Assembly (NCBI GenBank): GCA_977016875.1
Contig: CDRNST010000035.1
Span: 4,216,001 to 4,280,000, forward strand
Direction: 5' to 3'
Length of the DNA stretch: 64,000 nucleotides
DNA from: Pavona decussata
Taxonomy: Eukaryota
Numbering within the stretch: the first letter of the stretch is position 1; each line of letters begins with the position of its first letter. Positions 57,436 to 58,605 of this stretch are shown in pieces. The translations under genes and the position numbers were made by a program. Below the pieces are notes generated by a model. The model had not been told where the DNA came from. It saw only the letters and a list, made by a program, of their open reading frames with translations, and made no database searches.

Positions 57436-58605
57436 CATGACATTGTTGGGCCATCTCAAAAAATGTGTCCACCAGGTCATCACATTGTTTCTTCCAACTG
57501 AAATGGTTGGTGTATTCTTCTCTCAGTTCCTCAGCTTGTGAGTGGCGACTTTGTGGGTTCAAGGATCTGATCTCCTTTATCTTATCAGCCCAAACTTGTG
57601 GATCATCTGACTCCACAACCTGGCTTGCTCCAGAGCTCAGCTTCTTTAAAATGATGCCAAGGCCACTAAATGAACTGACAAGAACAGGAACATTGGCAGA
57701 AATGGCGAGGAGACCACTCATTCCAAAACCTTCAGTTCTTGACGGTTTGATGACCAGGTCAGCCTCACACAACCATTGACGCCAGTCTGCATGATTTTTA
57801 CCCACCCTCACTGTAAGCTGACGGGAATCAATGCCCTCTTTGAGTAAGGCCTGCTGTACGTCGGCCACATCTGTCTCTGATTCAGAGGGCCTTAAAACAA
57901 CCATTAACTGATAAGATGATGCGTTCAGCAACTTGATTGCTTGAGCAGCAATGTCGCATCCCTTGACTTTAAAGTAATATGATGATCCACTGACCAACAC
58001 ATGAAATTTGTCAGCCTCATCATACACTTGACGAACACCATTCAATTCTTCCATAACACCTGGTGTTAACTCAATCACATTTTCATACCTGCGAGTAAGC
58101 CGTAAATAACGTCTGTACGCTTCTGCCACCTTAGGGCCAATTGCAATAATGATGTCAGCCTTTTCACAGAGTGTTACTTGAAGTTTATGATCATCTCTAC
58201 AATCTTGTGGATCTTCTAAGAATTGATAAAGTTCATCACTGATTGTGTGCACAACCTGAGCCCACTTGCATTTCTTGAGTTTCTTTATAACTTGTGCTTG
58301 TCGACCTAGGCCAGGTCCGTATGAATGTATCAACAGAATGTCAATCTTTAGGTGGTCAGGTGGGTAATAAAGGAGCTCAGTTGGTGGGTAACCAGAGAGA
58401 TCCTGATCCACATCAACAAGTTCAATATTTAAGCTACTTGCATGGTTTCTCTGTTCCTTTGAGTGACAGGGCACAAATCCACTGACTTTCAGTCTGGAAT
58501 CCTTGGCCAGTTCAAGAACTAACAGCGTATTGACGGTATTTTTCCAGTTACCAACATCTGATGCTAATGTTATATTTAACTTTCCTTCAGCTGTTGACTT
58601 TGAAC
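57436..58605 (-). CDS. G4 exon: GT4-like glycosyltransferase domain, paralogue of the G3 exon
   Basis: cctgtttacag|GT TCA ... CAT G|gtaagc, 1170 nt, phase 1-1. About 36 aa differences from the G3 exon (hand count). Confidence 0.88.

Follow-up and report, generated by a model that had tools for sequence, protein, structure and literature searches.

Two copies of a GT4 exon in different gene contexts

The window analysed here is a 64,000-nt stretch of a stony-coral genome of 602 Mb (C35:4216001-4280000), and coordinates below are positions within it unless another sequence is named. It carries two copies of a GT4-conflict exon, c1 and c2, spaced exactly 16860 nt apart, with the following features around them.

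40576..41745, minus strand: copy 1 (c1) of the GT4-conflict exon, 1170 nt, phase 1-1, in a gene with GT4 and death domains; PF20706 match with E=2.7e-54
57436..58605, minus strand: copy 2 (c2) of the GT4-conflict exon, frame and splice sites intact; PF20706 match with E=9.7e-54
39128..42095, minus strand: duplicated block around c1, from self-BLAST, comprising the exon, ~350 nt of the intron before it and ~1.4 kb of the intron after it; large indels are present
56129..59319, minus strand: duplicated block around c2, from self-BLAST
37219..37719, minus strand: intact death-domain exon downstream of c1 and outside the duplicated block (Pfam Death E=1.3e-8; tblastn with Montipora and other GT4-Death proteins)
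54750..55051, minus strand: a different death-domain exon downstream of c2, frameshifted (two tblastn pieces in different frames)

The c2 exon has its acceptor at 58606/58605 (...TTACAG/GT, the slash marking the splice boundary) and its donor at 57436/57435 (CATG/GTAAGC), and the equivalent sites of c1 lie at 41746/41745 and 40576/40575. The introns are in phase 1 on both sides of each exon, making c1 and c2 symmetric cassettes. The open reading frames run on to a stop, as they would in terminal exons; this candidate structure was ruled out by homologues, which place a GT donor 41 nt earlier, followed by a death-domain exon. The 41-nt tail past the donor contains zero differences between the copies. 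In homologous full-length coral proteins the order of the domains is GT4, then Death, and the closest named relatives of the protein are from Montipora, Oculina and Orbicella.

Self-BLAST limits the duplication to ~3 kb around the exon, and therefore c2 lies in a gene context other than that of c1. The flanks of the duplicated blocks are 8-15% diverged, with 83 mismatches in 774 aligned nt. The frame of the death-domain exon after c2 is broken by the loss of 1 nt near 54838; a stop follows ...ATVGGLLNC, and the domain ends up ~25 residues short. L034 and the second haplotype (L100) have the frameshifted exon with identical sequence, so that the deletion is on both haplotypes. Judging from these sequences, the chimeric gene with c2 may be decaying, or it may make a truncated death domain. 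Upstream of c2, 0.65-1.75 kb past the window end (64000), lies a trypsin-like exon (L034:2721-3825) with an open reading frame of 272 aa; at the DNA level it has 89% identity with another trypsin-like exon, the first exon at window 30558-31657.

An independent assembly of this haplotype (L034) has exactly the same c2 sequence, and two further ENA assemblies of the second haplotype contain both copies, 16.7 kb apart. An assembly artefact, in which two haplotypes had been placed in tandem, was ruled out by this arrangement together with the extent of the duplication (~3 kb), and c1 and c2 are true paralogues. The second haplotype differs from the window at 13 bases in c1 and at 3 bases in c2 (L100). 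Its non-coding divergence from the window (L031/L100) is ~2-6% around c1 vs 0.4-0.7% around c2; the low value near c2 could reflect a recent sweep or plain coalescent variance.

A GT-B domain of the GT4-conflict family

Both copies match PF20706 over its full length (185.1 and 183.2 bits vs a cut-off of 26; profile positions 15-385 of 385). An AlphaFold2 model built with 64 homologues (pLDDT 89.8, pTM 0.88) has alternating strand-helix elements in two halves, and on this model the exon product is predicted to be a complete domain with the two-Rossmann GT-B fold. The nearest solved structures found by Foldseek are MshA, BshA, PglA and WaaG, with TM scores of 0.65-0.74 and E-values down to 1e-14. 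The coral exon has in common with these bacterial GT4 enzymes the fold, the FxxKG motif and the first glutamate of the EX7E motif, which corresponds to the nearly invariant E291 in the profile alignment to WaaG. It differs from them in that it is just 14-17% identical, that the second motif glutamate is gone and that it occurs in an animal gene, in fusion with a death domain. At the position of this second glutamate, the family consensus has Arg and both copies have Leu, so that the two are alike here and each retains one of the two EX7E glutamates of canonical retaining GT4 enzymes. Because the second glutamate is replaced, ordinary catalysis appears doubtful in the GT4 branch to which c1 and c2 belong.

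At least 103 paralogous GT4 exons are present in the genome, the next closest to c1 and c2 being 58% identical in protein. The GT4 clade was described by Kaur, Burroughs, Iyer and Aravind 2021 (eLife 10:e70394, PMC8195603), who reported >500 paralogues in Acropora digitifera and fusions of GT4 to death-like adaptor domains, and proposed an immune effector role; the paper contains no selection analysis. The coral expansion, the GT-B fold and the combination with a Death domain are common to the GT4 domains of those conflict systems and to c1 and c2, whereas c1 and c2 are a single young pair inside the expansion and have the second EX7E glutamate replaced.

Differences between the copies

We compared the two 1170-nt exons ungapped at the offset of 16860 and found 54 nucleotide differences, which fall into 36 amino-acid-changing codons and 8 synonymous-only codons, with no stop and no indel. 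The first-pass annotation, from a hand comparison, had given ~36 amino-acid and ~7-8 synonymous codon differences and the same absence of stops and indels, and the exact count bears it out. Transitions and transversions are equally frequent (27:27), and the differences are distributed 25/12/17 over the three codon positions. All five of the patches that had been named are present in the alignment.

57854..57870, minus strand (exon nt 737-753): the largest patch, GVRDIT in c1 and DVADVQ in c2, with 8 differences in 17 nt
58087..58098, minus strand (exon nt 509-520): RHTSKH in c1 and RLTRRY in c2; model residues 169-173
58366..58369, minus strand (exon nt 238-241): GH in c1 and YY in c2 (LLGHPP/LLYYPP); model residues 79-80, in the loop before N-domain strand 4
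57634..57637, minus strand (exon nt 970-973): HT in c1 and SS in c2 (LHTG/LSSG); model residues 323-324, in a C-domain loop, at a family-variable position
57559..57562, minus strand (exon nt 1045-1048): KD in c1 and LN in c2 (SKDP/SLNP); model residues 348-349, in a loop between C-terminal helices

The GVRDIT/DVADVQ patch covers model residues 245-250, at the start of the helix after strand 2 of the C-terminal Rossmann domain, and c2 accounts for five derived states among its differences and c1 for one, the remaining two being unpolarised. The RHTSKH/RLTRRY patch lies where an N-domain helix ends; within five codons it has four non-synonymous changes, each of a single base and each derived in c2. 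Together, the five patches lie on different elements across both Rossmann domains. The replacements are mostly polar, and 34 of the 36 are in helices or loops; the two in beta-strands are both conservative.

The claim that the changes cluster in multi-nucleotide patches holds strongly at the level of bases and weakly at the level of residues. Adjacent differing bases occur 10 times in the exon vs 2.4 expected, a number reached in 0 of 20000 permutations, and there are 17 pairs of differences within 3 nt of each other vs 6.8 expected (P=5e-5). Adjacent changed residues number 6 vs 3.1 expected (P=0.08), and changed residues within three positions of each other 11 vs 8.6 (P=0.19). Since the clustering is strong for nucleotides and weak for residues, the patches consist chiefly of multiple base changes within one codon or two adjacent ones. 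Adjacent mismatches exceed expectation in the aligned non-coding flanks as well (20 vs 8.8). Long nucleotide-identical blocks, likewise pointed out beforehand, do exist, the longest being 141 nt, but their length is not unusual (P=0.057).

Source of the patches

Micro-conversion from diverged paralogues was considered as a source of the patches and was ruled out for this assembly, as the longest exact matches that span any patch among the 88 paralogues are 9-15 nt long, about what chance would give. The 15-nt match is to a c1 state, which out_a has as well and which was taken as ancestral; out_b differs at two of its three sites. A genome-wide search tolerating as many as 3 mismatches found the c2 versions of the GVRDIT/DVADVQ and RHTSKH/RLTRRY patches at no other place. 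Because no other paralogue has the patch sequences, templated conversion from family members is unsupported, and multi-nucleotide mutation events, possibly kept by selection, would be the simplest source.

Between c1 and c2 themselves, the exon dS of 0.047 is half of the flank divergence (0.092-0.107), and this shortfall hints at exon-limited gene conversion after the duplication. For c1 vs g3, a related genome introduced below, dS and flank divergence agree (0.073-0.086 vs 0.073-0.086). The three-way flank site patterns are 20/17/13, with which the exon-vs-flank ratio test is not significant, and just two sites point to an exchange between c1 and c2.

Rates of protein change

The pairwise NG86 estimate (S=264, N=945, Sd=11.7, Nd=42.3) gives an omega of 1.01, and other estimators give similar values (YN00 1.05, LWL85 1.13, ML 1.17), all of them resting on just 8-12 synonymous differences. 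The pairwise dN/dS is not above 1 by Fisher's test (p=1.0 two-sided, 0.60 one-sided). A ratio well below 1, or a random placement of the changes, had been named beforehand as speaking against diversifying selection; the range of 1.01-1.17 does not go that way, yet a significant excess over 1 is also absent.

Codon models were fitted with our own GY94-type code and F3x4 frequencies, adding to the two copies their counterparts in the second haplotype, the related coral species g3 (L102, L103), a further related coral species, sp2 (L033), four more distant orthologues and four paralogues. The g3 genome (ENA ERZ26692669 ctg61233) has two c1-type loci with GT4 and death domains, 23 kb apart, which differ at 18 of 1211 bases with an omega of 0.67 and in one of which the death-domain exon is doubled; no c2-type locus was found in g3. 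The single copy in sp2 (L033:10001-12336) is a chimera of two diverged parts, with a 355-nt overlap that breaks the frame. Its use as a simple outgroup was dropped in view of this overlap and the divergent second part, and its first 1074 nt alone were used.

Judged by synonymous sites, the nearest relative of each copy is the other one: dS between c1 and c2 is 0.035-0.047, vs 0.066-0.090 to g3 and 0.21-0.24 to sp2, and they have nine derived sites in common vs one and four for the other groupings. Non-synonymous divergence does not follow this order, as dN is 0.048 between c1 and c2 and 0.038 between c1 and g3, though the dS of the former pair is about half (0.047 vs 0.073-0.086). In a branch model of 15 sequences and 381 codons, omega is 2.01 on the c1 stem and 1.77 on the c2 stem, compared with 0.30 for the background, 0.31 for the pre-duplication stem, 0.54 for g3 and 0.35 for the haplotype tips. 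The joint post-duplication omega of 1.86 differs from the background (2dlnL=26.8, p=2e-7) and from the polymorphism class at 0.35 (2dlnL=6.8, p=0.009), but in the same 15-sequence model it is not significantly different from 1 (2dlnL=2.60, p=0.11). A 12-sequence branch model agrees, with the c1-stem omega at its upper bound. All or nearly all changes on the c1 stem are non-synonymous. The c2-branch omega ranges from 1.05 to 1.8 across models and is indistinguishable from 1, and c2 has ~25 private derived changes vs ~10 in c1 (~2.5x).

Branch-site and MK-type tests

With both post-duplication branches in the foreground, the branch-site test, coded by us and run with the background branch lengths free only in their overall scale, gives 2dlnL=19.4 (p=5e-6), placing 6.8% of sites at an omega of ~20. 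Codons that differ at two or three bases head the list of sites. Masking the multi-nucleotide codons cuts 2dlnL from 19.4 to 2.67 (p=0.05), so the signal rests on these codons; the branch omega after masking is 1.64 vs a background of 0.30, and it is not different from 1. Venkat, Hahn and Thornton (bioRxiv 10.1101/165969) report that multinucleotide mutations lead to false positives in branch-site tests, and the branch-site signal here behaves like the artefact that they describe. As there, the coral sites with the highest posterior are codons with two or three differences. The coral pair departs from that artefact in keeping a residual omega of 1.64 and an MK-type signal, and the pattern is thus not wholly explained by it.

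The MK-type table, with two haplotypes per copy, has 39N:7S fixed between the copies vs 8N:8S polymorphic (p=0.014), and counting by codon gives p=0.004 for the same sample. At two synonymous sites one c1 haplotype has the derived c2 state, a possible result of exchange; p becomes 0.058 when these are left out and 0.10 when all four shared-state sites are. The comparison leans to some adaptive fixation.

Constraint on the exon

Several observations argue that the exon is not free of constraint in c1 and c2. Besides the lack of any stop, which by chance has P=0.09 for 54 random substitutions, zero indels were found vs 4.6 expected at the ratio of the flanks (P=0.01). The changes are distributed 5/11/17 over the tertiles of family conservation (p=0.007), favouring variable columns, the splice sites are kept, and polymorphism within the copies has an omega of 0.35 (1N:2S in c2). 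The exons do not have the profile of pseudogenes: there is no stop and no indel, the changes are biased to variable columns and polymorphism is constrained. Three results point the other way: the non-coding flanks are 9-11% diverged, about twice the value at synonymous sites, omega is ~1 in each conservation class and the death-domain exon of c2 is frameshifted. Taken against the flanks, dN is only about half the neutral rate. The synonymous differences follow the same gradient as the non-synonymous ones (pS 0.022/0.037/0.079), a pattern that selection and regional or mutational heterogeneity would account for equally well.

Comparison across the family

Among the 88 paralogues, young pairs (dS 0.02-0.15) have a median omega of 0.31-0.37. 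Three other young GT4 groups besides c1 and c2 reach 0.8-1.0, one of them on the same contig (C35:4332395-4410587, L008-L010; the others are on C415, L039, L065 and L084, and the pair L049/L086). Most GT4 tandem arrays lie at ~0.3, for example the copies sampled on C64. The positions changed between c1 and c2 fall on 7 of the 49 top-decile variable columns vs 4.5 expected (p=0.19). Mean recurrent variability is 0.30 at the changed columns vs 0.23 (p=0.014), a weak enrichment that is only indicative, since the set of non-overlapping pairs behind it includes some with undefined dS.

Interpretation

The post-duplication burst of protein change is genuine and statistically solid: both branches are accelerated, the frame has been kept in both copies and their polymorphism is constrained. 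Positive selection on c1 and c2 is plausible. In the account that we propose, a ~3 kb cassette with the symmetric, phase 1-1 GT4 exon came to lie in a neighbouring death-domain gene, its copy being placed 16.9 kb further upstream. After this copying, or after the last homogenisation of the exon, both copies would have passed through a burst of amino-acid replacement at ~6x the usual family rate relative to synonymous change. The changes fall nearly all in helices and loops, off the beta-strands and the family-conserved columns, and each copy would then have come back under purifying selection. The burst was probably in part adaptive, as each GT4 domain became suited to its own partners or gene context, and probably in part a matter of relaxed constraint, above all in c2. 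We infer the adaptive component, and we give episodic divergence after duplication with such a component an even chance of being the right account. The first-pass annotation had spoken of apparent diversifying selection; branch omegas of 1.8-2.0 and the MK-type result (p=0.014) go in that direction, but the excess of omega over 1 lacks significance (p=0.11), the branch-site signal fades when multi-nucleotide codons are masked, and none of the tests that allow for multi-nucleotide changes is significant.

Relaxed constraint alone is a rival account. Under it c2 drifts in a decaying neighbour gene, the redundant c1 drifts too and the frame survives by chance. The c2 branch would suit it well, with an omega (1.05-1.8) that is indistinguishable from 1, ~2.5x the derived changes of c1 (25 vs 10) and a following death-domain exon whose frameshift is fixed on both haplotypes; omega of ~1 in every conservation class is also what drift would give, and the chance of meeting no stop (0.09) is not decisive. 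Yet the c1 branch is accelerated as well, with changes that are all or nearly all non-synonymous (omega 2.0, 15 sequences), polymorphism is constrained in both copies (omega 0.35; 1N:2S in c2), the 4.6 expected indels are missing (P=0.01), strands and conserved columns are avoided and the MK-type comparison of two haplotypes per copy gives p=0.014. We therefore consider relaxed constraint alone rather unlikely, while giving it a share in the proposed divergence.

The first-pass annotation had also seen in the patches a pattern typical of a recognition surface in an arms race. On this reading diversifying selection would be continuing, as in immune receptors. The family has been proposed to act in immunity and conflict and is hugely expanded in corals (PMC8195603), and the omega estimates of 1.8-2.0, the mostly polar replacements in helices and loops and the MK-type result with two haplotypes per copy (p=0.014) would all be at home in an arms race. 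Several results speak against it: polymorphism at an omega of 0.35 is unlike balancing or diversifying selection, and the changes overlap just slightly with the variable columns of the family (7 vs 4.5 expected at 49 columns, p=0.19), in which most young pairs evolve at ~0.3. The residue-level clustering is weak (P=0.08-0.19) and the five patches are spread over different elements of both Rossmann domains, so that an arms race appears quite improbable. The best explanation for the multi-base patches is multi-nucleotide mutations, which selection may have kept, and not an extended hypervariable surface. Such mutations, combined with an exon-limited conversion that erased older divergence, might also have produced the whole non-synonymous excess as a by-product. 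The adjacent differences in exon (10 vs 2.4) and flanks (20 vs 8.8), the loss of most of the branch-site signal on masking, the exon dS at half the flank divergence (0.047 vs 0.092-0.107) where c1 vs g3 has the two equal, and the g3 copies, which differ by 18 nt only, speak for a mutational or recombinational artefact of this kind. Against it, the masked branch omega is still 1.64 vs 0.30 for the background, no donor was found among the 88 paralogues or genome-wide, the contrast between exon and flank is statistically weak (20/17/13) and just two sites hint at exchange between the copies; we regard it as very unlikely.

Young gene duplicates often show accelerated protein evolution through relaxed constraint and/or neofunctionalisation, and the overall pattern at this locus is ordinary for them. 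As in other young duplicates, omega is up on both daughter branches right after duplication and constraint follows, and the relocated copy is the faster one. The unit is unlike the usual one, being a single domain-sized exon cassette put into another gene by exon shuffling. The pair thus offers a clean and datable case of a single-domain exon copied into another gene with fast change in both copies, and the survey of paralogues supplies a family baseline, most tandem arrays having an omega of ~0.3 and a few young groups one of ~0.8-1.0. A practical warning also follows: patches of adjacent bases that are visible by hand make standard selection tests over-confident.

The GT4-conflict expansion is among the largest and least understood putative immune families of reef corals, and the question of adaptive diversification among its members matters for understanding microbe recognition in corals. 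One more specific reading, which we hold to be a long shot, is that the GT4-like domain may be a ligand- or partner-binding module without ordinary catalysis and that both copies may have been adaptively re-tuned after the cassette was copied. If so, novel pairings of sensor and adaptor would arise in corals through the shuffling of a symmetric domain exon whose surface then diversifies rapidly.

Other features of the window

Several repeats lie elsewhere in the window. A perfect 264-nt direct repeat occupies 8412-8675 and 8816-9079, with the copies 404 nt apart. A pair of ~300-nt inverted repeats, 93-96% complementary, lies at 23829-24423 and 25176-25771, and they are probably the ends of a mobile element. 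Next to them, 25942-27804 contains ~31 tandem copies of a 45-nt unit, with a GC content of 52% vs a background of 37-40% and several open frames; on the minus strand the repeat contains a 620-aa open reading frame with a mucin-like PPVAQP...STTAGSG repeat. The chimeric GT4 copy of sp2 directly abuts a 45-nt proline/threonine-rich repeat like that at window 25985-27600.
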